Positions 1,940-22,289 of a stretch of 32,000 bases of DNA are shown piece after piece. The translations under genes and the position numbers were made by a program. The notes below the pieces were generated by a model. That model saw nothing but the letters and a program-made list of their open reading frames with translations. It searched no databases and was not told where the DNA came from. The DNA is from Paramicrosporidium saccamoebae KSL3 (Eukaryota > Fungi > Cryptomycota), in contig MTSL01000048.1 of the NCBI GenBank assembly GCA_002794465.1, positions 50,535 to 82,534 on the forward strand. The letters run 5' to 3'. Positions within the stretch are counted from its first letter, which is position 1, and each line of letters begins with the position of its first letter.

Positions 1940-2145
1940 GATAATAAACTCCTGATTGGCTGGTGAGTGTTTTTTGCAAAGACCAATGACTGGGGACAAT
2001 TAGGGACTATTTCAAAATAAAGACTGTCGATTGGACACGAGTTGGATTGACGAATGGGAGGGTGGGAGGGACGAGTGACACGCTAGCAACCGAAACTTGG
2101 CAACGAAGTACGATACAAAGGAAGGCAGACGGACGATGCAACACG

Positions 2146-4428
2146 ATGGCGTCACCGACAAAGCACACTGAAGACACGATCCGTCTTTTATTGCCGTTGC
2201 CGACAACGTGCACCCTGCCGACGATGCGCTACACCATTGATCGACTGCGGACGACATTGTCCTGTGAGGTGGAATTGCTACCGGCCTCCCGGACCGTATC
2301 CGTACAAGGACAACGTGCTCAGGTTATGGCAGCGCGTCAGCAATTGGCCCGAGCAAGACGATCAGAACGCATGACGATGCGCTATCGACAGCGAATGGAA
2401 AGTCCAGCTGCAATCAGCGTCGCCAGGGTAGGCACGGGGGAGAAGGAGCTGAGAGTGCAGGGAGTTCCCGATGAGGAAGAAATTGACGGGGACGTCACTG
2501 ATCTGGAATATGCACGATTGGCACACATTATGGAAATGGACGGAGGCGTGCGTCAAGAAATCTCAATCCCCTTGCACGTGGCTGGACGAGTGGCAGGTTG
2601 TTCTGGTCGAAATCGATTCCACACGCTCCTAAAGAATGGAGTATTGTTAGAGGTAGCAGGAAGGATTTGCGAGAAGGAGCTTGGCCATGAGCATGAGCAT
2701 GAACACGAAAATGGGACTGGGACTGGGACTGGAAATGAGACTAGTTCCCAGAATCCTCAGCATCAACATCTTCAGACTAAGTGTACAGTGTTTCTCAGTG
2801 CTCGCACTCAGGAGGAACTCGACGTTGTGCAAAAGGGCATTTTGGAAGATGCGGCTTCCACCGAGGCGATGCAATTTGCTCTTTGTGTGGATGAACGTTT
2901 GTCAGATTGGTTATTGTCCCATCGCCGGACGCAGCTGCAGCAGATTACTTATAAAAATGGGACAAGTGTGTCATTGCGACCAACAACGCTGTTAGTGCAT
3001 GGCCATCGACGTGAGACAGTGCGAACTACAGCGGAGGAGATTACGCGATTGACTCACAACTTTCATTCGTGTACATTGTGGTTGGCAGAACAGTATGAAA
3101 CGCTTCCAGTGCTGTTGGAACGAGCAGCTCGACAGAGCGGTGCTGAAATCCAACAGGCCTCTCATGCGGTAGACCTATTTGGGACGCAGGAGCAGTTGCG
3201 CACCGCTATTGCCACATTGCAGGCGGCAGGCATTGAATGTCTGCAGATTAAATATCGACTGGGTCAGAGTGAAGAGATTCGCGATTTTATCAGTGGTAAG
3301 AAGGATGGGAAACTGATCAAAATTATGAAAGAGACGGGTGCCTCCATTTCATTGGGCGGTTCAGGCCGTTTAGGCATTGATTCCCAAATCGACATTGAAT
3401 TGGTTGCCCAGGATCCTGACTCTCTTGCCATTGCCCTCGATATGTTATTGGGAGAGTTTCCTGCTGAACGTTCCTTCTTCTTAGCTGACAGTCATCACAA
3501 ACGACTGATTGGCCACGGTGGCAGGACCATCCAGCGGGTCATGAAAAAGTATGCCGTGTACATTAAATTCCTCAGTGCGGAGGAGGCGGCAGCTCGTGCA
3601 CCTGTCGATGCCATGGCTTTGCCCCGAGTGTTGGCTAGTCGACTGCCCAATGTATTGGTCCGTACTCCCTCAAAGAACGAAGAGGCCTTAAGTGCGGCAC
3701 AGGACGAGATCCACGACATGGCCGAGGAGCTTGAGCACCAAATCCCCAAACGCGTCATGCGATTGGATCGTCATGCTCTATTAGCTCTCAGTGATTCTGA
3801 ACGGACGGCATTGGCAGACTTTCTTAGACAGTTTCGAGAGTCATTAGACTTTTCCGTTCCGTCCACCTTTTCAGAGAGTCCCGAGGATGATGGCGTCTTT
3901 GTTATCAAAGTGCGTGGATATCAGACACCTTTGAATCTGTTCTATGAACGGGTCACCGGTGATATGGCATCTCTCATTAAGCCTCTCCTCCACACGGCTG
4001 CCGTCTCTCCCCCGTCCACACCCACTACCCTCCCCTCGCCCACCATTTCCATGCAGAGTAATCTGTCCGTCAGTAGTTCGGCCAGCTGGACCGCCCAATC
4101 CCCCGACCTGTTCTCCCATTTCCCCATGTCGGTGCTGCAGCCTCCCGTTTCAACTACCCTCACTCCCACCAGTCCCATGGTTGCGCCAACAAAGCTGCCT
4201 CAGTTGGGATTCAATCCCACCATTGGCAGTCAGAAGCGCAAACATTGTCCCTGGAACATGGGCTTTCCCAAATTGTCGCTCATGACGGTCGATTCGCTCT
4301 GGCGGAACGATGTCGATGACTTTACTACACTGGTAAGATTTTGTTCGTGTATTGACGTATAGGATTGGAAGATTATCAGTGAACAGCATTACCGGAGAAG
4401 GGCATCCTCTGTATTCCGTGCTCAATAA
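2146..4428 (+). CDS. KH-domain RNA-binding protein (fungal Mug60/YLL032C-like); predicted 30-nt intron 4333-4362 near 3' end
   Basis: KH-like segments FISGKKDGKLIKIMKETG and FPAERSFF..SHHKRLIGHGGRTIQRVMKKY.VYIKF; Ser/Pro/Thr-rich tail. First ATG is at 2146. Intron GTAAGA...TTGAC.GTATAG extends the frame to DWKII...FRAQ*, whose TAA overlaps AATAAA. Confidence 0.8.
2686..2733 (+). repeat. Coding hexamer microsatellites (HE)n and (GT)n inside KH protein
   Basis: catgag-type repeats then gggact x3, encoding HEHEHEHENGTGTGTG. Confidence 0.85.
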
Positions 4429-4797: not shown

Positions 4798-5745
4798 ATG
4801 AGGCTGGCTTGTTCCTTGCTCCTCTCCACAGTGTGCGGCGCTGCTAATGTTCTATTTCATTACAAGGGAGACTCTCTTCCTTCTATTGGAGAGAAGGGTG
4901 ACTTTAATTATTTATCTGCAGGAGGATTTGTCGCCAACGATGGAAATCTGGAACTCTGGAATGACGCATTGCATGTAGTGAGCCTTCCGTTCAAGTCTTC
5001 CCACTTTTCGCTCCTGGACAATCCCAAATTCCAGCTCTTTACTAACCAACATTTCTCAATCAAGGATAAGCTAACTGTCAAGATGACATCCCACATAATG
5101 ACCTCGGGCGTGGATAAGCATCCCTTTGGCGATCAAGTCTTCAGTCCGTGTAGCGATCCACGTCTGGCAGCAGGTACAATGGTTGCAAAGGACAATGAGA
5201 ATGGCATTGTTTACAGCTTTGTGCTGGCCGAGGGATACATCTTTGCCGTGGTCCAATCATTGCTGGTGACGCCAGGGGGACCGAGCGATGCTCCACGAGC
5301 CGCCTATGCCATCCCTCTCCTCGGAATCAGTCCAATGGGCGAGTATAACATTGGAATGCACTTTGATCGGGCAGCTGAGACAATCTCCTGGGTGATCAAC
5401 GGATATCAGCACTTCCAAATGAAGAGTTCGGAATTGCTACCGCCAGAGCACAAGGTGTTGAAATGGGGACCCGATGCAACATTTAAATTCCCCAACCGTA
5501 TCACTGTAGGATTTGGGACTCTCAGCGCTCTGGAATACTACCCGCCCCAATATCCGCCCGACTACCCACCAAACGGACAGAATGTTGGGATTGCCCTAGT
5601 GAAGCTGGCAGCGCCGATGCAGTTTCTAGATCCAAAGAATGATGGGCCAGCACAGTATTTTATTGATCATAGTGATCCTGAGTACCAGGTGTGGGGACAG
5701 GGAGCCATGCTCGATGTTCAGGACCTCATCGTCGAGGCACAATAA
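4798..5745 (+). CDS. Secreted tandem-array paralog 1 (subfamily A), DUF6081-like
   Basis: ATG 4798 gives signal peptide MRLACSLLLSTVCGA. Family motifs VLFHYKG, DNPKFQ, HPFG..SDPRLA, YAIPL, ISWVING, WGQGA.L. Intronless. Confidence 0.85.
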   Translation: MRLACSLLLSTVCGAANVLFHYKGDSLPSIGEKGDFNYLSAGGFVANDGNLELWNDALHVVSLPFKSSHFSLLDNPKFQLFTNQHFSIKDKLTVKMTSHIMTSGVDKHPFGDQVFSPCSDPRLAAGTMVAKDNENGIVYSFVLAEGYIFAVVQSLLVTPGGPSDAPRAAYAIPLLGISPMGEYNIGMHFDRAAETISWVINGYQHFQMKSSELLPPEHKVLKWGPDATFKFPNRITVGFGTLSALEYYPPQYPPDYPPNGQNVGIALVKLAAPMQFLDPKNDGPAQYFIDHSDPEYQVWGQGAMLDVQDLIVEAQ

Positions 5746-6110
5746 AGCGTTATTTAGTTTGCAATCAGATTCAATTGGCAATAATTCCACCCGGAACCCG
5801 CCAATCGAAAAATGCGATCCCATCGGCCCGATTTGTAAGACTGGCAATCGATCTGCCAGTCCATCAACAGACTTGCAAGTTACTGAGAATCGATGGTGGT
5901 TTGGATAACGCCGACCCATTAATTCTATGACAGTCAGGCGCCATGCTACTCCGTTCCAAAGATTCTAGACTGCTATCAATCACAAGGTCTGTGCGCAATT
6001 AACTACTTGGAGATTGAACATTCTAGACATGTGGCTTAGCATCGATCTTTGGGTTTATCATATTAAACGTAATTTCTGACGTATAGTCGCTGATAGTGTG
6101 CGCCATCGAG

Positions 6111-7034
6111 ATGAGAATAGCCTGCTTATTTTTCGCGTCAACAGTGTATGGTGCCGGCGTGGTATTTCAGTATAAGGGAGACACTCTTCCTTCCATTGGA
6201 GAGGACGGTGACTTTAACTTTTTCTCGGCCGGCGATTTCATCAGCAATGATGGAACGGCTCGCATCCAGGATGAAAGACTACTTATTGATAGCTCCCCCT
6301 TCACTTCCCATTCTCCTACGCTCCTTGACAATCCCAAGTACCAAATTTTTACCAACAAGCACTTTTCTATCGATGATTCTACATTGTCTGTCAAAATGAC
6401 AGCTGCTGTAACCACGCCCGGTGTGCAAGATCATCCCTTTGGCCCATACGTCACTAATCCGTACAGCGATCCGCGCCTGGCAGCTGGTGCAATGATTGTC
6501 AAGGACGACGAGCATGGCGTCATTTACGACTTTGTGCTGACCGAACAACGCATCTGTGCTGTGGTCCAGTCTCTGCTATTTACACCAGCGGGGCCAAACC
6601 AATCTCCAAGCGCTGCCTATGCTATCCCTCTCCTTGACACTACTGAAATGACACGTCATCAACTTGAGATAAAGTTTGACGGGGTAGCCAAGACGATCTC
6701 CTGGGTGATTGATGGACAGCAGCTGTTCCAAATGAAGAGCTCTGAGATGTTGCCAGCAGAGCACAAGGTGCTGAAATGGGGACCCAATGAGCTATTCAAG
6801 TTCCCCAACAAGATCAATGTCGGTTTCGGGACCCTAACTGCGTTTGAATATTATCTGTCCGACGAAAACACTGAAGGGATAGCACTGGTAAAGTTGGCGG
6901 CGCCAATGCCTTTTATTGATCCGAGAAGCGACGAGCCTGCGCAGTATGTCACCGACTCTGCTGTTAAAGAATACCAAGCATGGGGACAAGGCGCTGGGCT
7001 CTACATCGAGGAGCTTGTAGTCGAGCGGCAGTGA
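6111..7034 (+). CDS. Secreted tandem-array paralog 2 (subfamily A), DUF6081-like
   Basis: ATG 6111, signal peptide MRIACLFFASTVYGA. Collinear with and closest to paralog 1 (LLDNPK, SDPRLAAG, AAYAIPLL, EHKVLKWGP, WGQGA). Confidence 0.85.
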   Translation: MRIACLFFASTVYGAGVVFQYKGDTLPSIGEDGDFNFFSAGDFISNDGTARIQDERLLIDSSPFTSHSPTLLDNPKYQIFTNKHFSIDDSTLSVKMTAAVTTPGVQDHPFGPYVTNPYSDPRLAAGAMIVKDDEHGVIYDFVLTEQRICAVVQSLLFTPAGPNQSPSAAYAIPLLDTTEMTRHQLEIKFDGVAKTISWVIDGQQLFQMKSSEMLPAEHKVLKWGPNELFKFPNKINVGFGTLTAFEYYLSDENTEGIALVKLAAPMPFIDPRSDEPAQYVTDSAVKEYQAWGQGAGLYIEELVVERQ

Positions 7035-7582
7035 ACCTGAGAGCCAGTTCAGCATATAGCGTGGCACATCATCCAATAAACAAGGACTACATGTTAATAG
7101 TATATAGCGTATTGAGGACTAGAATTTGTGATTATACAATCTCGCAGATAGGTAAAGGCCGAGAGGTTTGAGTCTGTCGTATGCTCTACTCTGGTAGACC
7201 CTTCTTAACTATGATATACTTACACCTATTGGTTATGATTGGGCTCGCTTGCCCACTCACGCCCCTTACTGACCGTTAGTTGTTCCGCAGACGCAAGGAA
7301 CTTAATGTCCGGCCATCTGATCTAGAGAGATACTTTTAAATGTATTCTACCTATCCTGTTACTGTAATGAGCACAAATGTTCAATATCTCGCCTCCCCAC
7401 CAATCCAAATTTCTTCTTAAATTGCAAAGTAGTGGGGTCGTTACTAAAACACACTGTTGATTAGGGTCGATAGTTCCATATAGTACAGTCACTATCGAGG
7501 CTCACCTAATTCGTCAGTATCATCAAGATTGCGGTATATTAAAATGTTACTGAAATGCGGGCCTAATTATTACGATATCACC

Positions 7583-8527
7583 ATGCTCCTCTGGAATGCA
7601 CTTCAACTAGCATCTTTCGTGTCCAGCGCCAAGGTGCTCTTCGAATACCAGGGACACGAGCTGCCTAATATTGGCCCGAAGGGTATTTTTGATTATCCTG
7701 TACATCCCAACCTGCCTACAGATGGCGAACAGCTCACAATCAAAGACGATCGTCTTGTGATAAACAGTTATCCATTTAAGCACACTCGAGCTGATTTCCA
7801 TGATGCCCTCAAGTTTCAAATGTATACGAATGATCGCTTTAAATGCAATTCAGGAAAGGTAACCGTTCAAATGACTGGCGGCGCTCTCATGCATGGTGTT
7901 GAAGATAATCCCTTTGGGGAAGAGCCCATGCTCTCTCAAATCGACGCCCGCCTAGTAGCGTCAGTGTTCAATGTGCAGGATGATAAAGGGCAGGTGTTCA
8001 ATTTTATCATTACAAATGCCAGAATTAGCGCCGTTATCCAAGCCCCGTTCATCTTCCCACCCAGCCAAGAAGAGGTTACCAGCACTATGAGTTATAATAT
8101 CCCCTTGGTTGAGACGCAGGCGGGAGAAGAACACACTTTGGCCCTGATTTTTGATGCTGCTTCTCAGTCAGTGTCCTGGTCGGTTGATGGGACAATTCAC
8201 TACACCTGGACAGTCGATTCACAGATCCCTCAAGAGAACTGTATTCTTAGATGGGGCGATCTAAACCGTTTCACTTACCCAGGCAATTTTGCCGTCGGAT
8301 TTGGCAACTACGAAACCTTGTCATATTACCCGCCCCTAAATGACGCTAAGGCTTTTGGTATAGAGTACAAGGGACTGGTGAATCTCCCTTTCGAGCTACC
8401 CCTTTTCGATCCCCAATCTGGCGAGCCTGCCGAGTACATGACTAGCTCTAGTGAGCAAAAAGACCATACCTGGGATCGAGGAGCTATCCTGAGAATCAGG
8501 GACATTATTGTCACTTATGAGGTGTAA
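7583..8527 (+). CDS. Secreted tandem-array paralog 3 (subfamily B)
   Basis: ATG 7583, signal peptide MLLWNALQLASFVSSA. Motifs KVLFEYQG, DALKFQ, NPFG..IDARL, YNIPL, VSWSVDG, WDRGA.L. Confidence 0.85.
   Translation: MLLWNALQLASFVSSAKVLFEYQGHELPNIGPKGIFDYPVHPNLPTDGEQLTIKDDRLVINSYPFKHTRADFHDALKFQMYTNDRFKCNSGKVTVQMTGGALMHGVEDNPFGEEPMLSQIDARLVASVFNVQDDKGQVFNFIITNARISAVIQAPFIFPPSQEEVTSTMSYNIPLVETQAGEEHTLALIFDAASQSVSWSVDGTIHYTWTVDSQIPQENCILRWGDLNRFTYPGNFAVGFGNYETLSYYPPLNDAKAFGIEYKGLVNLPFELPLFDPQSGEPAEYMTSSSEQKDHTWDRGAILRIRDIIVTYEV
8114..8242 (+). repeat. 129-nt near-identical coding block shared by paralogs 3 and 6 (partner 12025-12153)
   Basis: 5 mismatches in 129 nt by manual alignment (TQAGEEH...PQENC). 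Confidence 0.9.
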
Positions 8528-8789
8528 ACCCTAATTAAAAGTGAGATTGGTAATAAATATTTCATTAGGGCGGACGGAGAAGAAGATTTTTACTAAACAA
8601 TATGGCTCTTTTTAGGCAACCACTCTCAATATCACGGCCCTGACGTGTAACTGATATGCACATTCAAGTCTCCAGGCACAAAATGCTATTTTATTACAGA
8701 TACTTTATGTGGGATATTGGTTTGTGAACGTGCTATCTCGTATAAGCCAAGCAAATTGGTTGCTAGCAATCTCATCTTTTGCGGGAGGT

Positions 8790-8871
8790 GGACCAATGAG
8801 AAGAGGTCTAGCTAGAATCCATTAAGATGCAATCTCAAGATACCACCCCCGGATTAGTGGCTGAATTTAGT
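8790..8871 (+). promoter_or_regulatory. Conserved upstream block of subfamily C genes (copy at 12684-12773), with CCAAT
   Basis: ggaccaatga...ctagaatccattaagatgcaatctc.agatacc.acccc..ggattagtggctg.attta.t precedes both ATG 8872 and ATG 12774. Confidence 0.6.
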
Positions 8872-9804
8872 ATGCAGTTGCGAATTCTTCTTGCCTTGAC
8901 TGCCGTTGCGTCGGCGAGCACCAAGCTTTTCGAGTATAATGGCAGCGGGGACCTGACTGCCCCCCTCGAGGAGCAATTCCGATATCTTGATTCGCTTTAT
9001 GACGAAGATACTGGCAAGCGTATTCCTCAGGCCCGGAATGGAGTTATGTGCCGCACCGCCGAGGGACTAGTTGTTGGGTGCAGTCCATCCCAATCCACTT
9101 TCTCACCTTCTATTCCAGGAGCTCAGTTTGTCTTGGGTGCCCGACCTCTGTTCCCCGTCCAACCTGGTAGTCTGGCCATAGAAGTGGCAAGCAGTGTCCA
9201 TATATATGGAGTTGAGAACCATCCCTTTGGTGACAAAGTCAAAGACCCGCACACTGACACGCGCCTTGCGTGCTCCACTATCGCCGTGATTGCAAGCGGC
9301 CGAATGTTCTTCAGCTTTACATTTACCAATGAGATGATCTATGCGTCAGTTCTTAAAGGATCGACTAAATCCGCACCGTCAGCCCTTCAGTATTTGATTC
9401 CATTGATCGCTACGAAGGCTGGAGTGATGCACAAAGTCAAATTCATATTTAATGATGATCTGAAGCGTATAGACTGGCTCGTCGACGAGCAATCGCTATT
9501 CTCGTGGCAACAGGACACAGTGATTGACAAAAAATATTTAATTGAACAGATAGGTGAAGACGCAGTCCTTAAATTTCCCACAAATGAAGTAGTCGTCGCA
9601 ACTGGAATTTTCACATTTTGGAATGATTTCCTGCCGCTGGAAGGAGAGCCAAAGGAGCATACGGCGGTGCTCGATCCGGCTACTCCCGAGCCAAACTTTT
9701 GCCTTAGTGAGCAAGCCCAGAATGCTGCAAAGTCAATTTTTAAAGATTGGAGCCCGGAAGTTATTTTAACCATCAAAAACATTACAGTTACTCGAGAATA
9801 CTGA
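8872..9804 (+). CDS. Secreted tandem-array paralog 4 (subfamily C, divergent)
   Basis: ATG 8872, signal peptide MQLRILLALTAVASA. Motifs KLFEYNG, HPFGDKVKDP..DTRLA, FTNEMIYA, YLIPL, IDWLVDE. Lacks DxxK and WxxGA. Confidence 0.85.
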   Translation: MQLRILLALTAVASASTKLFEYNGSGDLTAPLEEQFRYLDSLYDEDTGKRIPQARNGVMCRTAEGLVVGCSPSQSTFSPSIPGAQFVLGARPLFPVQPGSLAIEVASSVHIYGVENHPFGDKVKDPHTDTRLACSTIAVIASGRMFFSFTFTNEMIYASVLKGSTKSAPSALQYLIPLIATKAGVMHKVKFIFNDDLKRIDWLVDEQSLFSWQQDTVIDKKYLIEQIGEDAVLKFPTNEVVVATGIFTFWNDFLPLEGEPKEHTAVLDPATPEPNFCLSEQAQNAAKSIFKDWSPEVILTIKNITVTREY

Positions 9805-10013
9805 ATAGACAAAGATGTCCTCTTTTAGATAAAATCTACATTCATTTGCCGGTTCATGAGACAGGTTTTACAGAATACGTCTCAAGCTCAGATAATGAGC
9901 GTATACCGGTCGATCACCAAGCGTTCCAAATATCGATGCATTGCCTCACAAAGAATAGGGTCTAAGGATTGCCTGCACAGACCGATTAATATCTCTCCAG
10001 ACCAAAAATCCCA

Positions 10014-10169
10014 ATAAAGGATCTGTCGATGGGTGAAAACTCTCTTTTATTAAAGTATGTGGCTTCTTTACAGGTAGCCATTCCTAATATAGCCAAGCTG
10101 GCCTGCGGGGCCGCTATCTGGGTCGGACTCATCAATGATGAGTGGACGCGGTTTAACAGGATCTTTACT
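10014..10169 (-). mobile_element. Dispersed repeat R1 (~155 nt), MITE-like, inside the array
   Basis: Reverse complement aligns to 29873-30025 at roughly 80% identity by eye. Ends resemble inverted repeats (TAAAGATCCTGT...ACAGATCCTTTA). Confidence 0.6.
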
Positions 10170-10330
10170 ACTACGGACGGGTATGGCGGATCAAAATTCC
10201 TCAGCAATGAGTCCTGGCTACTACGGACAAGTGTCTGACGAATTAAAAATCTTCAATAAAGGACCGCTACTACAAATCTCACAAATGCTTCATTTCACAA
10301 TCTTGGGCCCTGGTTTCAGTGGCGGGTAAG

Positions 10331-11278
10331 ATGAAGTGGTCAGGAATTTTGCTTTCGCTAGCCACTGTTGCGTCAGCGAGCAAGGTGCTTTTTGAATACG
10401 ACGGCAAAGAGCTGCCAATTACGGGACCTAAAAAACAATTTGAATATCTACCTATCAAAGATAGGCAGTCCCTGGGCCAGGACGGAAGACTGAGCATCAC
10501 CGCTGAGGGACTAGTGATTGACAGCAACCCGTTCAGGCATACAGTCCATTCTTACCAAGACCGCATCAAATTTCATATTGGATCCAGAAATCCAATTGAA
10601 CTTAATGGCATCACGACCGTTCATATGACTGGCAGTGTCCAGACATTTGGGGTTGAGAACCATCCCTTTGGCGACCAGGTTTCCAATCCTCAAAGCGACC
10701 CACGACTCGCTGCCGCAGCAATCACGGCCTATGGGGAGACTGGGGAACATTTTAGCTTTACATTCACTAATCAAAAGATATATGCGGGGATCAATGCGAT
10801 GCAAAGAGATGCGCTAACGGAGGCGATGACAGGTTTTACCGAATACCGCATTCCTCTGCTAGTCGATACGCAGGCTGGTAAGCAGCACGCCGTTCGGTTG
10901 ATATTTGACAAACTTTGGAAACGAGTTTTGTGGTACGTCGACGGACAGCTGATGTACGAGTGGAGGGAAGGCTCGGTTATTTCCAAAAATTATTGTGTTA
11001 CCAGATTTGGCTCTAAAATATCTCCCACTTTTCCTCGTGGAAAAACCATCAAGATTGGACTTGGGACTTCATCGGGATTAATGTCCTACGCGCCACGAGT
11101 GGGTGAATCCAAAGAGGATAGAGCACTGGTCATGTTGGAACCTGGCATGATCAATCCTAATGACGATGAAAAGGCCAATTATGTTAGTGAGTCAAGGGAG
11201 GAGGCATGGCGTCTGTGGGATCACGGTGCTGTTTTCACAGTCGGGAATGTAAAAGTCACCCAAACGTACAACGTCTAA
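10331..11278 (+). CDS. Secreted tandem-array paralog 5 (subfamily D)
   Basis: ATG 10331, signal peptide MKWSGILLSLATVASA. Motifs KVLFEYDG, DRIKFH, HPFGDQVSNPQSDPRLAA, FTNQKIYA, YRIPL, VLWYVDG, WDHGA. Confidence 0.85.
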   Translation: MKWSGILLSLATVASASKVLFEYDGKELPITGPKKQFEYLPIKDRQSLGQDGRLSITAEGLVIDSNPFRHTVHSYQDRIKFHIGSRNPIELNGITTVHMTGSVQTFGVENHPFGDQVSNPQSDPRLAAAAITAYGETGEHFSFTFTNQKIYAGINAMQRDALTEAMTGFTEYRIPLLVDTQAGKQHAVRLIFDKLWKRVLWYVDGQLMYEWREGSVISKNYCVTRFGSKISPTFPRGKTIKIGLGTSSGLMSYAPRVGESKEDRALVMLEPGMINPNDDEKANYVSESREEAWRLWDHGAVFTVGNVKVTQTYNV

Positions 11279-11496
11279 ATGGATTCGGATGCCACATCAT
11301 AATTAGATTGAGGTGTTGCGTGACCGTGCCTAAAATATATTGCTAGTCTGACCGATAATTTCACTGAATAAAGCAATCGCATTTCAAGCAATTTTCTCGA
11401 TTCGAAAGGATCTCTAAATTGCATGTAATCTAGCAAACCTATCTCATTATAATGCCATTTATATAATAAATGACGTACTTTATACGACATTGCACA

Positions 11497-12441
11497 ATGC
11501 TTCTCTGGACAGCGCTTCAGCTAGTATCGTTCGTGTCCGGTGCCAAGGTACTTTTCCAGTATAGAGGAAACAGGCTGTGTTCCATCGGCCCAAAGGGTTC
11601 TTTTAAATATTTTGAGGGTCCTGGCTTTACTGCGAATGACGGAGAGCTCTCAGTTGAAGGCGGATGTCTTGTCGTGAACAGCTATCCATTTAAGCAAAGT
11701 CGGTCCGATATATCTGATACCACCAAGTTTCACTTGTCCACAAATCGTGCCTTTCAATACAAAACAGGGAAGGTGATTGTTCAAATGACTGGCAGCGCAA
11801 TAATGCACGGTGTAGAAGATAACCCCTTCGGAGAGGGTTACGCGCTTTCTAGGATTGACTCACGACTAGCCACTTCCGTGTTTGGTGTGCGGGATGCTTG
11901 TGGGCAGGCGTTTAACTTTCTTATTGTAAATGGCGAGGTCAGCGCTATGATCCACGCACCGTTCAGTACATCACCCGGCCCAACTGTTACCAGTACCATG
12001 TCCTATAACATTCCGCTGGTCAATACGCAGGCGGGGGAAGAGCACACTTTGGCCCTGATTTTTGATGCTGCTGCTCAGTCAGTGTCCTGGTCGGTTGACG
12101 GGACAATCCACTACACCTGGACAGTCGATTCACAGATCCCTCAAGAGAACTGTGTCCTTCGGTGGGGCGATCCAAACCGCTTCACCTACCCAAGAAAGTT
12201 TACTGTCGGGTTCGGGAACTATGCAGGCTTAGCATACTATCCGCCCGTGAGCGCCGCTAAAGCCTTTGATGTAGAATACAAAGGACTCGTAAATCTCCCT
12301 TCTCTACCAATGCTTCTAAATCCGCAAACCGGTGAACCTGCAGAGTTCATTACTGACTCGAGTGAGCAAAAAGCCCGTGTCTGGGATCGAGGAGCTGTCC
12401 TGAGAATCAGGGACATTATTGTCACTCATAATGACGCGTAA
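11497..12441 (+). CDS. Secreted tandem-array paralog 6 (subfamily B)
   Basis: ATG 11497, signal peptide MLLWTALQLVSFVSGA. Collinear with paralog 3, with near-identical C-terminal blocks. Confidence 0.85.
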   Translation: MLLWTALQLVSFVSGAKVLFQYRGNRLCSIGPKGSFKYFEGPGFTANDGELSVEGGCLVVNSYPFKQSRSDISDTTKFHLSTNRAFQYKTGKVIVQMTGSAIMHGVEDNPFGEGYALSRIDSRLATSVFGVRDACGQAFNFLIVNGEVSAMIHAPFSTSPGPTVTSTMSYNIPLVNTQAGEEHTLALIFDAAAQSVSWSVDGTIHYTWTVDSQIPQENCVLRWGDPNRFTYPRKFTVGFGNYAGLAYYPPVSAAKAFDVEYKGLVNLPSLPMLLNPQTGEPAEFITDSSEQKARVWDRGAVLRIRDIIVTHNDA

Positions 12442-12773
12442 ACCTTTTTGAGGTAAAGATTCCTTATTTGGAGAATGGGGAGAGTCGAAGGCTATATAAA
12501 AAACTCTCTATTGGAATCTTGGTTTGCAGTTACATCCTCGTACGCATACGTGAGAGCCTTGGATTAGGCCCAAGATTTAATTATCCAGTCGCGCGCTCAG
12601 CTGGGCTGCATAGGCCATTTTACTGTTACCATAATGAACAAAGAGATGTAATATTTCATGCTTGTAACATCTTTGTATTAAATGGACCAATGAAAAGGAG
12701 TCTGGCTAGAATCCATTAAGATGCAATCTCGAGATACCGATACCACCCCCTCGGATTAGTGGCTGGATTTAAT

Positions 12774-13688
12774 ATGCGGTTGCGGATTCTTCTTGCCTTG
12801 ACTACCGTTGCGTCGGCGAGCACCAAGCTTTTCGAGTATAATGGCAGCGAGAACCCGATTGCATTCCCCAATGGGAAATTTCGCTGTCTTGACTCGCCTT
12901 ATAATGAAGACACTGGTGAGAATATCCCTCAGAGCCAGAATGGAGATTTATGTCCCACTCCCGAAGGACTAATTATTGAGTGCAGCCCGTCCCACCTCAT
13001 TCAACCACAGTTCGTTCCAGGAGCTCAGTTCTTCATGTATACCGACGCTCAGTTTCCCGTCCAGCCCGGTAAGCTGGCCATAGAAATGACAAGCAGTGTC
13101 CATATTTATGGAGTTGAGGACCATCCCTTTGGTGACAAAGTTCAGGACCCGCACAAGGACCCACTTCTTGCATGCACCGCTATTACTGTGCATCCACACA
13201 GTGACATGCTGTTCAGCTTTGTATTCACCAATGAAGCGATCTATGCTTTTGTTACTAAATTACTAACGAGACCTGAGCAGCCAGGCGCTCAATATCTAAT
13301 TCCGTTGATCACTACGCGAGCTGGGGCAGTGCATACGACCAAATTTATATTGAATAATGATTCGAAGAGTATCAACTGGCTCATTGATGGGGAACAGCAA
13401 TACTCGTGGCAACAAGGCGCAGAGATTAGCGAAATCTACTTACTTAGACGACCCGGTGAGAATGCGGTCTTCCAGTTTCCCACAGGTAAAGTCGGAGCCT
13501 CGGTTGGAATTTTGAGTTTTTGGGACGAGCTTAAGGGGGAGCGCACGACGTCACTCGATCTTGATACTCTGGGGGTAAATCCTACCTTTGGTGAGCAAGC
13601 CCAGAAGTTGGCAGAGTCAGTTGACAATAAATGGAGTCCGAAAGTCATTTTCACCATCAACAGCATCACAGTCACTCAAGAATACTAA
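12774..13688 (+). CDS. Secreted tandem-array paralog 7 (subfamily C)
   Basis: ATG 12774, signal peptide MRLRILLALTTVASA. Collinear with paralog 4, including 5' and 3' flanks. Confidence 0.85.
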   Translation: MRLRILLALTTVASASTKLFEYNGSENPIAFPNGKFRCLDSPYNEDTGENIPQSQNGDLCPTPEGLIIECSPSHLIQPQFVPGAQFFMYTDAQFPVQPGKLAIEMTSSVHIYGVEDHPFGDKVQDPHKDPLLACTAITVHPHSDMLFSFVFTNEAIYAFVTKLLTRPEQPGAQYLIPLITTRAGAVHTTKFILNNDSKSINWLIDGEQQYSWQQGAEISEIYLLRRPGENAVFQFPTGKVGASVGILSFWDELKGERTTSLDLDTLGVNPTFGEQAQKLAESVDNKWSPKVIFTINSITVTQEY

Positions 13689-13996
13689 CTAAATGGAAAT
13701 GCCACATAAGTAAAATTTACATCCACATGTCAGTTCAATGGATAGGTCTTTAGGGATAGGCCACCATCCCTCAATTTAGGAAAGCCTGCTGCCGCAAATA
13801 GTAGATGCGTACTGGACAACCGTTAAACGTTCAAAATCTCGATCCAGTAACCCACACGGAGTATTCAAGTTTAAGGGTCGGCTCCTTAGACCGGCCAGTG
13901 TATATTGATAGACCAGAGATTTTGATAAGGAGCATTTACCACACCCTACGCTTGACGACAATGTTCGTAATCATTGGTAAGAGTTAAGATGGTAAT

Positions 13997-14357: not shown

Positions 14358-16286
14358 ATGGAAGAACGACGCAAAGTCACCACGACACAACTTTACAACC
14401 GTATCTTGGAATGCGAAGAGCGTTTTGACCGTCTTTCCTTTGACCTGCTCGCCAGCATGCGCTCTGGAGACCATGGCCGGGTTCAGTGGCTCGAAGCTCG
14501 ATATCTTTTAAAATTGCTCCATGAAGAGTTGCTGACAGCAGATGTGGAGTTTGTAGCCAAGAGCCAGTTGCTTGAGCCGTTGTGGAGACGGCTTTACTAC
14601 GGGGTGGTGGAACAGGCTCGGAGGGCAGAGGATGAACAAGTGGGGTTGGAGGTGCTGGCCTTGATTGACGAGGGTCTTGGGTTCTTTATGATCCTGTGCT
14701 ACAGGCTGCAGAAGGCTCTCGATGCGTTCAAGGACGATATGCCCCTATTTATCAGAACAATTTCGAAAAAAAAAGTAGTGCCGGTGGATCTTGTTAATGG
14801 TCTTATCTATGAGAGTCTCGTATACATGGGAGATCTGATGCGATATCGACACGGTTCTGTCTCAACCCAGCAGGCTGATTTGTCGCTGGCTGAGGGACAG
14901 TACAAACGAGCAGCCAAGTTACTTCCTGACCTTGGTCATGCCTACAACCAGCTAGCAGTTTTGTGTTGCATCCAAGATGAAGTCCTTCACGCCATCACAT
15001 ATTACCTGCGGGCAGCCATGTCCGTGACGCCATTCCCAAAGTCTACCGATAATCTGCTGGCAATTTGTCGTCGAGTGGTCAACATCCCCGAGGAACGGCT
15101 TGCACTCTCAGAGGACCCTGCGATGGCGGCATTCTTTGGTCTTTTAGCGCGATTGATGGCAGCAGTGATTGTGCACGACACTACCAGAAACACACAGTCG
15201 GTTCATCTCGAATCAATCACTAGCGGACTGGCAAAGCTCTTGCCGAGGTTGCAATTCGACTTGAAACCGAAAGAATTGGATGTTCTGCACCATTTGCTGA
15301 TGGGGATGATTCTCTCGGTAGAGTTCTTGCAACACCAAAGTGATGATGGACGCTCTCGCTATCTGTCAGCCAGTCAGATGCGTTTAGTGTTATGGATCAT
15401 TTGCTGCTGTGAAAAGTTTCTGTTGACAAAAATGATTTCAATCGTCTCGCCAGTCTGTCTTTGGTTTACACGGAGCGATATAATCAAGAGAATTCTTAGC
15501 ACTGATGCGGTTACCATACCGTTCGATGAGGCCTGGTCGAGATTCCTGCGGGTATTGGCGGAATCTCGTGCAGAATTGGGGGATCTGTCAGTTAGCTGCA
15601 CCAACGAGCTCTTGCTAGGGACAAGGCCCTTTGGACATTTTGAATTGGAATCGCCGCAGGATTGTATTAAGAAGGCGATTAAAGTGCTCGCTGATGAACA
15701 TTTCCTCCTCATCTATGACCCTGATGCCGACAGCTACTACTTGCGAGAAGAGACGAGCAGAAAAGACCTGCTGGGGACCCGCTTAGCAAAACAGAAACTT
15801 ACCAGGGAGGTTTTAAGCCTACAAAGTTCTATTCCAAAAGAAGTGTTATTCGAGTCTACTTGGCATTTGGTCGATGCTGAGACACTGTTGAAATTTTGGA
15901 ACTTGATCGAACCGCGTCTGGAGGCCCGCTCGTTTCGATTGATCATTACCCTTGCCGTTCTGCGATTCCTGGATGTTGCTAAAGCCGATCCCGGACATAT
16001 GATTGTCGCACGGCAGATTATGCGCTGCATTGCGTCGTTTAGCAAAAAGATTGACTCTCCCGTTCATTTGCAACATCCCTCAGAGATTAGCGAGACTGCG
16101 CTCCCTGCTCTGGCGAAACATCACAAGGCGCTCTTGTCGGCATATTATTTCTACAAACAGCCGCGGGGTTTGAAACCGTTGGTTATTCTATCCAACGATC
16201 CACTCTTGGATGGGATACTGAGCAAGCTTAACGTTGATCATGTTTCCAATATTGAAAAATATCTACTACCAAAACAATCGCAATAA
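14358..16286 (+). CDS. EST1/SMG5-SMG7 family protein (14-3-3-like TPR domain plus degenerate C-terminal PIN domain)
   Basis: EPLWRRLYY, LVYMGDLMRY, YKRAAKLLPDLGHAYNQLAVL, YYLRAAMSVTPFPKSTDNL match the EST1 domain. WHLVDAETLL, LIITLAVLRFLD and VILSND are PIN-like strands. Confidence 0.8.
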   Translation: MEERRKVTTTQLYNRILECEERFDRLSFDLLASMRSGDHGRVQWLEARYLLKLLHEELLTADVEFVAKSQLLEPLWRRLYYGVVEQARRAEDEQVGLEVLALIDEGLGFFMILCYRLQKALDAFKDDMPLFIRTISKKKVVPVDLVNGLIYESLVYMGDLMRYRHGSVSTQQADLSLAEGQYKRAAKLLPDLGHAYNQLAVLCCIQDEVLHAITYYLRAAMSVTPFPKSTDNLLAICRRVVNIPEERLALSEDPAMAAFFGLLARLMAAVIVHDTTRNTQSVHLESITSGLAKLLPRLQFDLKPKELDVLHHLLMGMILSVEFLQHQSDDGRSRYLSASQMRLVLWIICCCEKFLLTKMISIVSPVCLWFTRSDIIKRILSTDAVTIPFDEAWSRFLRVLAESRAELGDLSVSCTNELLLGTRPFGHFELESPQDCIKKAIKVLADEHFLLIYDPDADSYYLREETSRKDLLGTRLAKQKLTREVLSLQSSIPKEVLFESTWHLVDAETLLKFWNLIEPRLEARSFRLIITLAVLRFLDVAKADPGHMIVARQIMRCIASFSKKIDSPVHLQHPSEISETALPALAKHHKALLSAYYFYKQPRGLKPLVILSNDPLLDGILSKLNVDHVSNIEKYLLPKQSQ

Positions 16287-16427
16287 AGTTGGCGTTTGTA
16301 CTAAAGATCCTGCTAGTGGGTAGAAAAGGTACCTTGTTAAAAATTGTGATTGGGGCCTGGATTGGGATTGTCAACGACAGGCAGAATTTGTAGCTAAACA
16401 AAAGATTACCTTAATGATGGAATATTT

Positions 16428-16505
16428 ATAGGTAGCCATTCTCAATATGACTGGCAAGAGCTCCAAGCATTAGCGGATACTACCTTACAATGGCTTTTAC
16501 TCAAG
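16428..16505 (-). repeat. Internally deleted R1 fragment
   Basis: ataggtagccattctcaatatgact (16428-16451) matches the reverse complement of the R1 core at ~29.95-29.97 kb with 2 mismatches. Reverse-strand gagtaaa...agtatccgct resembles the R1 5' end. Confidence 0.55.
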
Positions 16506-16587
16506 CTTTAGCGCTTGTTGCGGCCACCAGCACAATTGGATAATTATATCCTTCCTCAGATTACGCATCCGAGTAAAGGTAATTGAG

Positions 16588-16776
16588 TGTTGCGTAGTGG
16601 GGATAATACTACAGACGGGAAGGGGGGTTGTTCACTGCTAATCCTATAATAGTATGGAGACACATCTCACTGTCCTCAAACACTCAGTTCATCAGTCCAC
16701 TTTATCACACAAATGTGTCGTCTCCAAACTAGGGAACCATTCTCAAATACCCAGCCAATCAATCCTCTACGTCACA
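16588..16776 (-). repeat. Dispersed repeat R2, copy 2 (inverted)
   Basis: 16721-16776 reverse complement vs 29505-29560: 43/56 ungapped. 16741-16760 is an exact 20-nt inverted match to 14073-14092. The gtattatccccactacgc block is shared with ~29690-29709. Confidence 0.75.
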
Positions 16777-16813
16777 TAAGCATAGCAGATTGGCTGACGA
16801 ATTAGCCAAATCC

Positions 16814-17868
16814 ATGTTTCCAGTATCGGAGAATACCAAGCTCTGGGAGGCAGTAAAGAATGAACATGTTTACAGTTTTTAGGTCTCGAACCAATACGAG
16901 TTGTCTCTTTTGGCAGTGGCCATCGAGCGTGGACTCATTAAAGCGCTTTCTGAAGGACCAAAGAGCCGAGACGATATTACAGCAGTGGGTATATTTGGAC
17001 CTCGAGCATACGATGCAATTGTCCCAGCTCTCATCTGCGACGGATATCTCATTAGAATCGACGGAAAATTGTACTTGACTGGTATATTGACTGGCCGTTC
17101 TTAATACTAGCACTGGGACAAACATTCTTAAAAGTTGGCAGCCCTTATAGCTGGGAAACAGTAATCAACTGTTTTGCCGTTGAACCCACAGCCATCCTGC
17201 ACAAGATTGACAACGAGATTCACGGCGAAGATCGAAATGCCAGCAAAGTACCGAGGAACTGGCGCATCAATGGCCCATCGGACTGTGAAGCGGCAAATTT
17301 CGCAAGTCTTATGAACAGCAAGTCAGCCGCACCTGCTGAAGCATTTGCCACAATAGATTTCCGCACTCTGTTTGGCACGAGGCGGCTTTTGGATATTGGT
17401 GGTGGGGCCGGTACTTATTCAGATCGGATTGCGGCTAAACACGATATCCAATGCACAGTGCTGGAAATGTCTGCAATGGCAAGATGCGTCCCGCAATATT
17501 GCAACTCGAGAGTAGAGGTAGTGACAGGCGATGCCTTACAATCACTACCTACAGGATACGACACCCATTTGCTTTGCGACACATTGCACATGTTTGATCG
17601 CAACGATGCACTCGCCATCTTGCGCAATTGCTACTCTGCACTGCCTGCTGGCGGAGTTCTTCTTATCAGCAGTTCAATGCTCGATGACGGCGGCTGTTCA
17701 CCACGCAACTCGGTGTACTTTTATGTGCACATGTTTGTGACTGGCGCTGGTTCACGGTACACGCCGACTGAATTCAGGGAGCTACTCAGTGAGGCTGGGT
17801 TTGGGGAAATTCAGTTTCAGCCCTACTATGCCCACTACATGCTGGTTAGCGCGAGTAAACAAAGATGA
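16814..17868 (+). CDS. SAM-dependent O-methyltransferase (Methyltransf_2-like, N-terminal dimerisation/wHTH domain); introns 16853-16882 and 17082-17110
   Basis: Removing two GT-AG introns (30 and 29 nt) gives one 331-aa ORF: MFPVSENTKLWEAVSNQYELSLLAVAIERGL..L.EGPKS...YLTALGQTFL..GSPYS...RLLDIGGGAG...GDAL..LP.GYD...LHMFD...LP.GG.L. Confidence 0.85.
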
Positions 17869-17911
17869 GGGTGTGAAAAGGATAAATGTATTGCTATTGC
17901 CTTATTACCGA

Positions 17912-17970
17912 ATCCCTGCATCCCTGCATCCCTGTATTACTGTATTACTGTATTACTGTATTACTGTATT
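17912..17970 (+). repeat. 8-nt-period tandem repeat (ATCCCTGC drifting to ATTACTGT)
   Basis: atccctgc x2, atccctgt, attactgt x4, ending just before ATG 17972. Confidence 0.9.
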
Positions 17971-17971
17971 G

Positions 17972-19003
17972 ATGTATTTTTTGGTAAAGGGTCATGAAAG
18001 GCAAGTCTCACTGGAATGCCAGCAAAACGCTTCTATATTAGAGCGAGTAAGGGGCAAGGTTGGGGACGAATACACTGTTTTGGAGACGGATAAAACTATC
18101 GTTGCCTCCTTGGAAGAGACACTTGACGTATATTTTAGCATTGCCGAAAAGGGACACGTTACTGTGTTCAAATTGGAATCTGGGGATGACTGTATCCTTC
18201 CAAGGATGATTCCCGGAGCAAATAATGACACTCGGCAAATAATCGTATTTGCTACTGATAATCCTGATGGCTTGCGCCTATATCAAACGAACTTTGGTGA
18301 TGAATTATTGCCAATAGTTGTACCTGATGCAAGAATCCTCACTGTTGAGCCGCAGGCGGCAATGACTGAAATTTATTTCTCCTTCAGTGGGAAGCCGTCA
18401 CTACTCGTGGTGGGTGTCTTTTCCGTCACTGCTTCCAAAGCCGCTGCACCGTTAGACACGCTGTTTGTCATAGAGGGCGAGGGGCCTAATGAAGCATTCC
18501 TTGATGACTCTTTTGTTGACTTGCCCTGTTTCCTGCCACCAATTGCAGATGAATTGCTCTCCGAGCTAGTTGCTGCAAATAGTGTTCATGTTGGGCCATT
18601 TGACTATCGTTGCTATGAGCTGGTGGCCCTTCAAGCTCTTCCGAAACTACAGCACGCGGTTCTCAGTGATTCCTTCCGGGACCATATTGCCAGTCTCACT
18701 GGTCTAACGTTGGTGGGCATATCATCTTTGGAGCTGCGCAGGATCACACCGGGATCTTATCAGTTACTGAACGATGAATATACTGAACCTGCCGGTTTGG
18801 ACGTGGTGATGACGCTGGGTGAGGGAGAAGGCGCCGTGCACTATCTAGTGGATGGAGAGCAAGTTGCAGAGGTAAAAGCTTTACATAACAGAATGGCTTT
18901 GGCATATCGGGTGGAAGGCTGTACGCGGTTCATGTCCTACGTGTCCCAGCGTGCAGAATCTACATATTACCAGCTGGTTGTCACGTTCAAAGTCAAAGAA
19001 TGA
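17972..19003 (+). CDS. Tpa1/Ofd1/OGFOD1-like protein, apparently lacking the HxD...H iron ligands
   Basis: C-terminal ELRRITPG.YQL..LDVVMTL...Y.....VKALHNRMALAYRVEGCTRFMSYVS matches the Ofd1 C-terminal domain. The N-terminal half looks like a degenerate double-stranded beta-helix domain with no HxD. Confidence 0.7.
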   Translation: MYFLVKGHERQVSLECQQNASILERVRGKVGDEYTVLETDKTIVASLEETLDVYFSIAEKGHVTVFKLESGDDCILPRMIPGANNDTRQIIVFATDNPDGLRLYQTNFGDELLPIVVPDARILTVEPQAAMTEIYFSFSGKPSLLVVGVFSVTASKAAAPLDTLFVIEGEGPNEAFLDDSFVDLPCFLPPIADELLSELVAANSVHVGPFDYRCYELVALQALPKLQHAVLSDSFRDHIASLTGLTLVGISSLELRRITPGSYQLLNDEYTEPAGLDVVMTLGEGEGAVHYLVDGEQVAEVKALHNRMALAYRVEGCTRFMSYVSQRAESTYYQLVVTFKVKE

Positions 19004-22281: not shown

Positions 22282-22289
22282 GGGTATCG

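Follow-up and report, generated by a model that had tools for sequence, protein, structure and literature searches.

The window analysed here is a 32,000-nucleotide stretch of contig MTSL01000048.1 from Paramicrosporidium saccamoebae KSL3, and it contains at 4798-13688 a tandem array of seven genes, designated g1 to g7, whose predicted products belong to the protein family DUF6081 (PF19559). The seven open reading frames (ORFs) are co-oriented on the + strand, encode 304 to 315 residues when counted from a conserved ATG, and have no internal stops, and a tblastn search of the window with the family found no extra copy or relic of the array. The gene g2 is PSACC_00526 of this species, and g7 was found on the same contig in GenBank assembly GCA_002794465.1, where the contig measures 82.5 kb and has the array in its interior. 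An initial annotation, made from the sequence alone, had described seven intronless co-oriented ORFs sharing a chain of motifs, and both the ORF list and the alignment bear this out: the aligned proteins have DG..L..S.PF, D..KF, HPFG...D.RLA, F..TN..IYA, and Y.IPL in common, as well as W.VDG, G.G, and W..GA...V. The alignment of the seven paralogues (A1) has 27 invariant columns, and the mature proteins are approximately 32-34 kDa and mostly acidic. Pairwise identity confirmed the four subfamilies that had been proposed: g1 and g2 are 60% identical, g3 and g6 66%, and g4 and g7, the most divergent subfamily pair, 56%; g5 stands alone. The g1 protein begins with MRLACSLLLSTVCGAAN, and the g2 protein is 96% identical to the database protein P0001, with the differences confined to the first ~15 residues. 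A small-genome eukaryote had been suggested as the host, which agrees both with the species and with the genes around the array, identified by Pfam as those for an SNF2 helicase, a KH-domain protein, Est1, Ofd1, WD40, UCH, SRP19, and PIGA. Neither the array nor its secretion nor a transfer is mentioned in the genome paper, the supplements of which do not contain the PSACC_0052x genes; the initial annotation knew of no description of such an array, and no published one was found. Coordinates are collected in Table 1.

Table 1. Genes of the DUF6081 array, duplicated blocks and upstream elements within it, and the two genes used as flanking landmarks; coordinates are positions in the window.
Feature	Coordinates	Strand	Evidence
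g1, DUF6081 paralogue, 315 aa, subfamily A with g2	4798..5745	+	PF19559 E = 8.4e-26
g2, DUF6081 paralogue, 307 aa, subfamily A	6111..7034	+	PF19559 E = 6.2e-35
g3, DUF6081 paralogue, 314 aa, subfamily B with g6	7583..8527	+	PF19559 E = 4.8e-19
g4, DUF6081 paralogue, 310 aa, subfamily C with g7	8872..9804	+	PF19559 E = 2.1e-16
g5, DUF6081 paralogue, 315 aa, singleton subfamily D	10331..11278	+	PF19559 E = 1.2e-25
g6, DUF6081 paralogue, 314 aa, subfamily B	11497..12441	+	PF19559 E = 8.9e-17; 100% match to P0003
g7, DUF6081 paralogue, 304 aa, subfamily C	12774..13688	+	PF19559 E = 1.4e-20; identical to P0005
Source block g3-g4 of segmental duplication	7583..9807	+	Direct repeats
Copy block g6-g7 of segmental duplication	11497..13691	+	Direct repeats; dS 0.73 for g3/g6, 0.56 for g4/g7
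Conserved element upstream of g4 (candidate for a promoter or 5' leader)	8789..8844	+	91% identity over 56 nt to 12683-12738
Conserved element upstream of g7 (candidate for a promoter or 5' leader)	12683..12738	+	91% identity over 56 nt to 8789-8844
KH-domain protein gene, upstream flank	2047..4362	+	Pfam KH_1 and related KH families
Est1-like gene, downstream flank, synteny anchor	14358..16286	+	EST1_DNA_bind; 92.7% aa identity to the ORF after the array in L023

A likeness to DUF6081 had been proposed in the initial annotation, and a Pfam hidden Markov model (HMM) search shows it to be real membership. The PF19559 model has 272 positions and a gathering score of 25.9 bits; all seven proteins exceed that score, at 60.4 to 121.2 bits (E = 6e-35 to 2e-16), and membership of the array in the family is far beyond chance. 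The match extends over nearly the whole model in three of the seven; the model positions covered are 23-269 in g1, 17-269 in g2, 7-271 in g5, 56-270 in g3, 59-270 in g6, and 68-270 in g7, and the match of g4 spans positions 83-244 only. NCBIfam has no model for the family. Members of PF19559 and the array share the motifs HPFG, D.RLA, TN..IYA, IP, and W.VDG, and the family-wide positions P109, F110, D120, P173, W198, and G240 are retained in the array, as are R122 in six of the seven proteins and T144 and N145 in five each. Other positions that are near-invariant in bacterial and in other eukaryotic DUF6081 members are not retained. Y152 (replaced by V or I), R154 (by S, A, or K), R177 (by T, I, or D), F168, D222 (by K, R, or Q), and G225 are lost from every array protein, and G211 is S or D in five of the seven. 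The motif WGQG is kept in g1 and g2 only, with G292/Q293 at its start replaced in the other five (g3 to g7). Elsewhere in the family the positions lost are 78-99% conserved: Y152 in 94% of members, R154 in 92%, R177 in 83%, G211 in 99%, D222 in 78%, and G225 in 92%.

Each ORF of the array opens with a hydrophobic segment of 16-18 residues ending in ASAS, SGA, or GAG, and in all seven (V/K)LF.Y.G follows directly. The maximum Kyte-Doolittle value over 10 residues is 1.3-2.4, and the segment is kept both among the paralogues and in the corresponding genes of three environmental relatives, so that the signal-peptide-like N-termini noted at the outset are present throughout and conserved. The proteins do not have a second hydrophobic span, a KDEL-like C-terminus, or a hydrophobic C-terminal tail. 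Among full-length homologues, an N-terminal hydrophobic segment is found in ~70% of those on the bacterial side of the family and in 48% of those on the eukaryotic side, and because so many homologues on both sides carry one, placement outside the cytoplasm is widespread and ancient in this part of the family. The initial annotation had supposed that secretion was added after a transfer from bacteria, which need not be the case when most bacteria-side homologues already have such N-termini. The NCBI models of g2 (PSACC_00526) and g5 differ from the plain ORFs in that short introns are implied, by which an upstream ATG is joined to sequence lying beyond the hydrophobic segment; the C-terminus of the g5 model is altered as well (the regions of difference are 6029-6173 for g2, and 10285-10405 and 11234-11330 for g5). 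The intronless ORFs are more likely to be correct than the spliced models, because the N-terminal segment is conserved across paralogues and across orthologues from three other organisms.

The AlphaFold2 model of g2 is all-beta, with a predicted local distance difference test score (pLDDT) of 94.1 and a predicted template modelling score (pTM) of 0.91; that of g7 is also all-beta (pLDDT 84.3, pTM 0.84) and has the same beta-sandwich core, but its C-terminal region 250-290 is remodelled where other members have LV.L..NP..G.P..F.D..RLWGQGA. Foldseek searches of the PDB with both models returned concanavalin A (ConA)-like lectin/glucanase jelly rolls at probability 1.0 and E down to 3e-9, so the beta-sandwich or jelly-roll fold that had been surmised from alternating hydrophobic strands is borne out at the level of models. 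When normalised to the query, the template modelling (TM) scores of the top matches are ~0.4-0.5; with normalisation to the target they are 0.5-0.6, and sequence identity is 7-12%. Among them, the glycoside hydrolases of family GH16 (6t2o, 4dfs, 6xof, 6ibu, 1gbg) have probability 1.0 and target-normalised TM of 0.53-0.61. The array proteins resemble ConA-like domains in the two-sheet jelly roll that is found in GH16 laminarinases, lichenases, O-glycanases, and Crh5, and the fold also matches PL7 alginate lyases, legume lectins, the Emp46/47 cargo receptors, and the globular domain of calreticulin; they differ in being ~50-80 residues longer. With legume-type and L-type lectins the modelled resemblance is one of fold, at 7-10% identity.

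Regular-expression scans of the seven proteins found neither the GH16 catalytic motif E-x-D-x(-x)-E in its expected form nor the PL7 motif QIH, and both catalytic motifs were rejected. A loose match to the GH16 motif, EYDGKE, is present at residue 22 of g5, beside the signal peptide. A sequence search of the PDB with the family profile gave only chance-level matches to antibodies and glucanases.

The history of the array can be read in part from direct repeats. The genes g1 and g2 are a tandem duplication with a repeat spacing of 1313 nt, and the g3-g4 block was duplicated as a segment to give g6-g7, as indicated by repeat families D2, D3, D6, D7, and D8 at a constant spacing of 3884-3911 nt. 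The paralogue pairs have synonymous divergence (dS) of 0.56-1.4 and ratios of nonsynonymous to synonymous divergence (dN/dS) of 0.20, 0.31, and 0.53, the last being that of g4/g7; the duplicates are thus old, and the purifying constraint on them is uneven. A 56-nt element upstream of g4 and g7 is 91% identical between the two copies, compared with 71-83% for the coding repeats, and because it is better conserved than coding sequence it is a candidate promoter or leader. Its 25-nt identical core occurs at two places only in the window, where none is expected by chance. The ATG within the element is in frame with g4, and before g7 it opens a short upstream ORF ending in TAG. Alignment of the upstream regions with MAFFT revealed no array-wide motif; only those of g4 and g7 are alike.

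Three short environmental contigs carry related genes: L023 (JGI 3300042203, Ga0451581_025326), L022 (SRR16214429), and L021 (JGI 3300079521). These derive from relatives of P. saccamoebae, congeners present in public metagenomes with their own versions of the array. L022 has a g4/g7-like gene followed by a co-oriented g5-like gene (64% identical to g5), L021 has three co-oriented g1/g2-like genes, and in L023 the end of a g4/g7-like gene precedes a g3-like gene (67% identical to g3), which is followed by Est1. The Est1 fragment of L023 is 92.7% identical to that of the window in amino acids and 85.6% in DNA (dN 0.038, dS 0.87), whereas g3 and its counterpart are 67% identical in amino acids (dN 0.209, dS 0.72); at similar dS, the dN of the array gene is thus ~5.5-fold above that of Est1. 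The array gene adjoining Est1 is of a different subfamily in P. saccamoebae and in L023, and the order of array genes differs in L022 as well as in L023. Because L023 keeps the synteny with Est1 but has a different subfamily beside it, the array is inherited within the Paramicrosporidium group, at the same site by Est1 in L023, and is turning over rapidly. In the sequence of events that we propose, the array would have grown by local duplication, through a single-gene tandem step (g1/g2) and a segmental step with a period of ~3.9 kb. The four subfamilies would be older than the split from the environmental Paramicrosporidium-like relatives, which have tandem arrays of the same subfamilies. Although selection on the genes is purifying overall, their proteins change ~5 times faster than the neighbouring housekeeping gene, and the order and content of the array genes turn over between relatives.

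DUF6081 had been introduced as an actinobacterial domain, a label that proved too narrow. An exhaustive HMMER search over 1.84 billion cluster representatives yielded 369 relatives with E <= 1e-3, of which 150 are listed. A word-indexed search with g2 alone found g2 itself and one metagenomic protein only; with a full-length alignment of 78 sequences that search returned 6 matches, low-complexity N-termini having probably overwhelmed its filter, and a domain-only alignment was used for it instead. A search of metagenome contigs with alignment A1 found no match, and the search of genome contigs used a four-sequence actinobacterial alignment and is biased towards Actinomycetes. Named bacteria with DUF6081 come from several phyla, Myxococcota among them, and include Streptomyces, Kitasatospora, Saccharomonospora, Actinosynnema, Pseudonocardiaceae, Myxococcaceae, and Stigmatella, and also Luteibacter, a Bacillus, and a metagenome-assembled genome of Paludibacteraceae. 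The named eukaryotes are all dictyostelids (Cavenderia, Heterostelium, Dictyostelium cf. discoideum, Tieghemostelium, Acytostelium, and Synstelium), and there is no named fungus, microsporidian, animal, or plant among the name-bearing matches listed, most of the matches being metagenomic. Many metagenomic relatives resemble eukaryotic proteins in composition, in carrying signal peptides or anchors, and in their cysteine-rich extensions, and some lie on contigs with typical eukaryotic genes: the contig of P0002 carries PRP8, GPDH, and Arf, that of P0134 carries RPS6e, CAF1A, SIR2, and BRO1, and that of P0157 carries B56 and Tfb2. P0066 adjoins a fused methyltransferase/DinB/FGE-sulfatase gene, which we take to have the architecture of the fungal ergothioneine synthase Egt1. 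Because dictyostelids have members and four groups lie on eukaryotic contigs, the family is neither only actinobacterial nor only bacterial.

The dictyostelid proteins (for example Cavenderia fasciculata DFA_01469 and Acytostelium SAMD00019534_122050) have the same domain as the array, and in dictyostelid and environmental eukaryotic homologues it often stands behind a signal peptide or an N-terminal membrane anchor. These homologues, among which the group of P0002, P0009, and P0010 is the nearest outgroup to the array, differ from it in keeping YxYER, R177, G211, GG, and WGQG, which the array does not fully do; many have cysteine-rich N-terminal extensions, and they are single-copy where the context can be seen. 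An N-terminal C-type lectin domain was considered for P0002 and rejected, as Pfam finds none. The 899-residue Heterostelium album protein PPL_01275 (P0029; "solute carrier family 40 protein" in UniRef) combines DUF6081 with a full ferroportin domain (FPN1); it is probably two merged genes and was not used.

In bacteria, DUF6081 also occurs fused to YceI, HAD, or Abhydrolase_3 domains (P0104, P0059, P0138), and its neighbours include genes for Abhydrolase_3, NADPH-FMN reductase, an SRPBCC polyketide cyclase, an acyl-CoA-dehydrogenase-type monooxygenase, an MFS transporter, and a zinc-dependent alcohol dehydrogenase (Zn-ADH); Abhydrolase_3 and NADPH-FMN reductase genes recur (loci L002, L005, L010, and L012). 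These bacterial contexts fit small aromatic redox chemistry. The eukaryotic branch, with dictyostelids and many protists, is not mentioned in the literature searched, in which the sole paper to name DUF6081, a study of NcnN, does not mention the bacterial fusions or neighbourhoods (PMC10697411).

Neighbour-joining trees were built on HMM-aligned match columns from 156 and then 268 sequences. The seven array proteins cluster with four metagenomic proteins at bootstrap 99-100, and the immediate sister of this Paramicrosporidium clade consists of eukaryote-side sequences only in 99 of 100 bootstrap replicates, including P0002, P0009, or P0010 in 40 of them. A single bipartition, which is without bootstrap support, separates all nine named bacteria from all 18 verified eukaryotic sequences, the array among them. 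Each of the seven proteins is also matched better by an HMM of the eukaryotic side than by one of the bacterial side, by 16-58 bits. The initial annotation had looked for a eukaryotic clade nested among bacteria as support for a bacterial gene having entered the genome; the sister group and the HMM scores agree in placing the array elsewhere. Within the limits of the tree, there is no support for the array having come directly from actinobacteria, and an ancient transfer between domains, in either direction, is possible somewhere in the history of the family.

The array could in principle be an artefact, a chimera of assembly or a contaminant fragment lying within a eukaryotic contig, but this has next to no probability. 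It is dismissed because eukaryotic genes lie on both sides of an array interior to its contig, because the composition of the array is that of its flanks (GC 0.485 in the array and 0.489 in the flanks; GC at third codon positions, GC3, 0.506 and 0.513), and because an independent metagenomic contig, L023, links an array gene to the orthologous Est1; nothing was found in favour of this scenario, which the initial annotation itself had raised. The same composition bears on the proposal that a DUF6081 gene passed directly from an actinobacterium to the Paramicrosporidium lineage, where it would have gained a signal peptide before multiplying to form the array. A recent entry should show as foreign composition, and GC and GC3 equal to the flanks give no such sign; bacterial promoter and terminator consensus motifs are likewise not enriched in the array over shuffled sequence. 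Direct transfer could draw on three observations: most of the named bacterial genomes in which close members occur belong to Streptomyces, Kitasatospora, and Saccharomonospora, as retrieved with an actinobacterial query alignment; bacterial members score highest against the Pfam model; and no fungus, animal, or plant appears among the name-bearing sequences. These are outweighed by the eukaryote-side sister group and the better eukaryote-side HMM fit of all seven proteins, by the location of the nearest relatives P0002, P0157, and P0134 on contigs with PRP8, Arf, RPS6e, SIR2, B56, and Tfb2, by N-terminal hydrophobic segments being common in bacterial and eukaryotic homologues alike, and by the array being common to relatives, once at the same site beside Est1, so that direct transfer is very improbable. 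Entry by eukaryote-to-eukaryote transfer from the amoebozoan host lineage, instead of vertical descent, is somewhat easier to entertain and is still unlikely. The sole named eukaryotes with DUF6081 are Amoebozoa, and P. saccamoebae inhabits the nucleus of Saccamoeba, which is also amoebozoan (PMC5701793). However, the neighbour-joining trees do not place the dictyostelids as sister to the Paramicrosporidium clade, a comparison made without tubulinean or Saccamoeba sequences, and the nearest sequences sit on gene-dense eukaryotic contigs.

The reading that we favour, at somewhat better than even confidence, is that the array encodes secreted beta-sandwich proteins of a native and fast-evolving family, which has departed from an ancestral chemistry and may act at the interface of parasite and host or at the spore surface. 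The array clade would descend from the eukaryote-side branch of DUF6081, in which approximately half of the full-length proteins appear to be extracytoplasmic. Its proteins would enter the secretory pathway, shed a signal peptide of 16-18 residues, and act outside the parasite cell as soluble proteins of roughly 32 kDa, with the spore wall, the cell wall, and the host nucleus as possible sites. A ligand, either a glycan or a small aromatic molecule, may be bound in the sheet cleft typical of the ConA-like fold, and the cofactor-independent hydroquinone oxidation of bacterial DUF6081 proteins would have been given up. We infer from sequence features that the proteins probably bind ligands rather than catalyse reactions, and that they are probably secreted and located in this way. 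Microsporidia have lineage-specific, expanded, and fast-evolving families of secreted or host-exposed proteins, for example the large gene families of Nematocida. The array is like these, in general features, in having signal-peptide-like N-termini, tandem clustering, diversification into subfamilies, fast evolution, and copy turnover in an obligate intracellular parasite related to Microsporidia, and it is unlike them in having a recognisable and widespread Pfam domain rather than being an orphan family.

The hydroquinone oxidation referred to is known from Streptomyces, where ActVA-ORF3 (actinorhodin), Aln6 (alnumycin), and NcnN (naphthocyclinone) are cofactor-independent oxidases that convert polyketide hydroquinones to quinones and form H2O2 (PMC10108166, PMC10697411). 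The closest database match of NcnN is named "DUF6081 family protein" (PMC10697411), and the connection between ActVA-ORF3 and DUF6081 rests on this NCBI product name as quoted there, not on an alignment. If the seven proteins were still secreted cofactor-independent oxidases, or related small-molecule enzymes acting on hydroquinones or phenolics, they could possibly cross-link or pigment the spore wall or generate H2O2 or quinones in the host, perhaps together with a nearby O-methyltransferase. This is the main rival reading, conceivable by analogy with the Streptomyces enzymes but doubtful. Apart from the known products of those enzymes and the name given to the match of NcnN, it would be consistent with the neighbours or fusion partners of bacterial homologues, which include FMN reductases, monooxygenases of the ActVA-5 type that resemble acyl-CoA dehydrogenases, polyketide cyclases, Abhydrolase_3, and YceI, with the retention of HPFG, D120, and R122 in the array, and with the presence 3.6 kb downstream of a PF00891 O-methyltransferase whose best solved relatives act on anthraquinones and anthracyclines. 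Against it, at least seven near-invariant positions are replaced in every or nearly every member of the array, the C-terminal WGQGA region is remodelled in g4 and g7, and fast protein evolution with copy turnover is unusual for a metabolic enzyme. The putative homology to ActVA-ORF3 is by product name, and the link to the O-methyltransferase is one of proximity, with Est1 in between. The array also differs from ActVA-ORF3, Aln6, and NcnN in being eukaryotic, in having signal-peptide-like N-termini, and in lying outside a polyketide cluster and without an NmrA-type partner gene: the genes that flank it are those for KH, SNF2, Est1, Ofd1, WD40, and UCH proteins, whereas bacterial homologues lie beside redox and tailoring genes.

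Several points weigh against a secreted binding family that has lost its ancestral chemistry. Loss of residues is no proof of lost activity, and judging from the alignment HPFG, D120, R122, and T144/N145 are largely retained. The Foldseek resemblance of the models is at the level of fold, with low TM and 7-12% identity. Secretion is deduced from N-terminal sequence, and the NCBI models of g2 and g5 drop the hydrophobic segment on which it depends. The trees were made by neighbour joining on saturated distances and have an unsupported backbone; the label "eukaryote-side" comes from the same tree and was verified by name or context for 18 sequences, and the nearest relatives (P0002, P0009, P0010, and P0157) are metagenomic proteins. 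Finally, dN/dS is below 1 throughout, and positive selection is not demonstrated.

Some other features of the window were noted. The PF00891 small-molecule O-methyltransferase (E = 3.6e-22) is encoded on the + strand at 16901-17104 and 17311-17868, with a probable N-terminal winged-helix part in another frame, which makes an intron or frameshift likely; the best solved relatives of the enzyme are the Photorhabdus anthraquinone O-methyltransferases Plu4894/4892/4895, plant O-methyltransferases, and DnrK, and a functional link to the array is possible. Public annotation fuses Est1, the O-methyltransferase, and the Ofd1-like gene into one product of 1268 residues (locus L024, 4585-6915, + strand), but in the window, at 14358-19003, each of the three is an ORF of its own and their frames differ. 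Within the Ofd1-like ORF, in its 5' part, is the octamer tandem repeat CTGTATTA, present 5.9 times at 17932-17978; translated, it gives a repeated ITVLLYY-like stretch, and it may be the sign of an intron. A repeat of 21-24 nt, present three times at 21712-21778, lies within the - strand ORF 21586-22353, which encodes a U1 zinc-finger protein. Two - strand ORFs, 25481-26191 and 26328-26894, separated by 136 nt that may reflect an intron or a frameshift, encode a glycosyltransferase of the PIGA type, and the first step of glycosylphosphatidylinositol (GPI)-anchor biosynthesis is therefore encoded. Two + strand ORFs, 27122-29482 (786 residues) and 19232-19972 (246 residues), have no Pfam match.

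DUF6081 has so far been an "actinobacterial" domain of unknown function together with three polyketide-tailoring oxidases, and the family of ActVA-ORF3, Aln6, and NcnN, described in 2023 as being without any structure (PMC10697411), is confidently predicted from the present models to have a ConA-like jelly roll. An attractive account of horizontal transfer is corrected, being unsupported here. The array proteins belong to a known Pfam family, and expanded secreted families are already familiar in microsporidian parasites. Paramicrosporidium stands at the base of the lineage leading to Microsporidia, and to our knowledge almost nothing is known of the means by which, from within the nucleus, it attaches to its amoeba host or manipulates it; a secreted array that is conserved and yet fast-evolving offers a concrete and testable candidate for the interface of parasite and host. 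Tentatively, and with well under even confidence, a ConA-like family with a large and often extracytoplasmic eukaryotic branch in soil and freshwater protists may have been turned by an intranuclear parasite of amoebae into a rapidly diversifying tandem array of secreted binding effectors, acting in the host nucleus or at the spore surface, that are without the ancestral active-site residues. If true, the Rozellomycota/early-microsporidian grade would have in this array its first candidate family of effectors.

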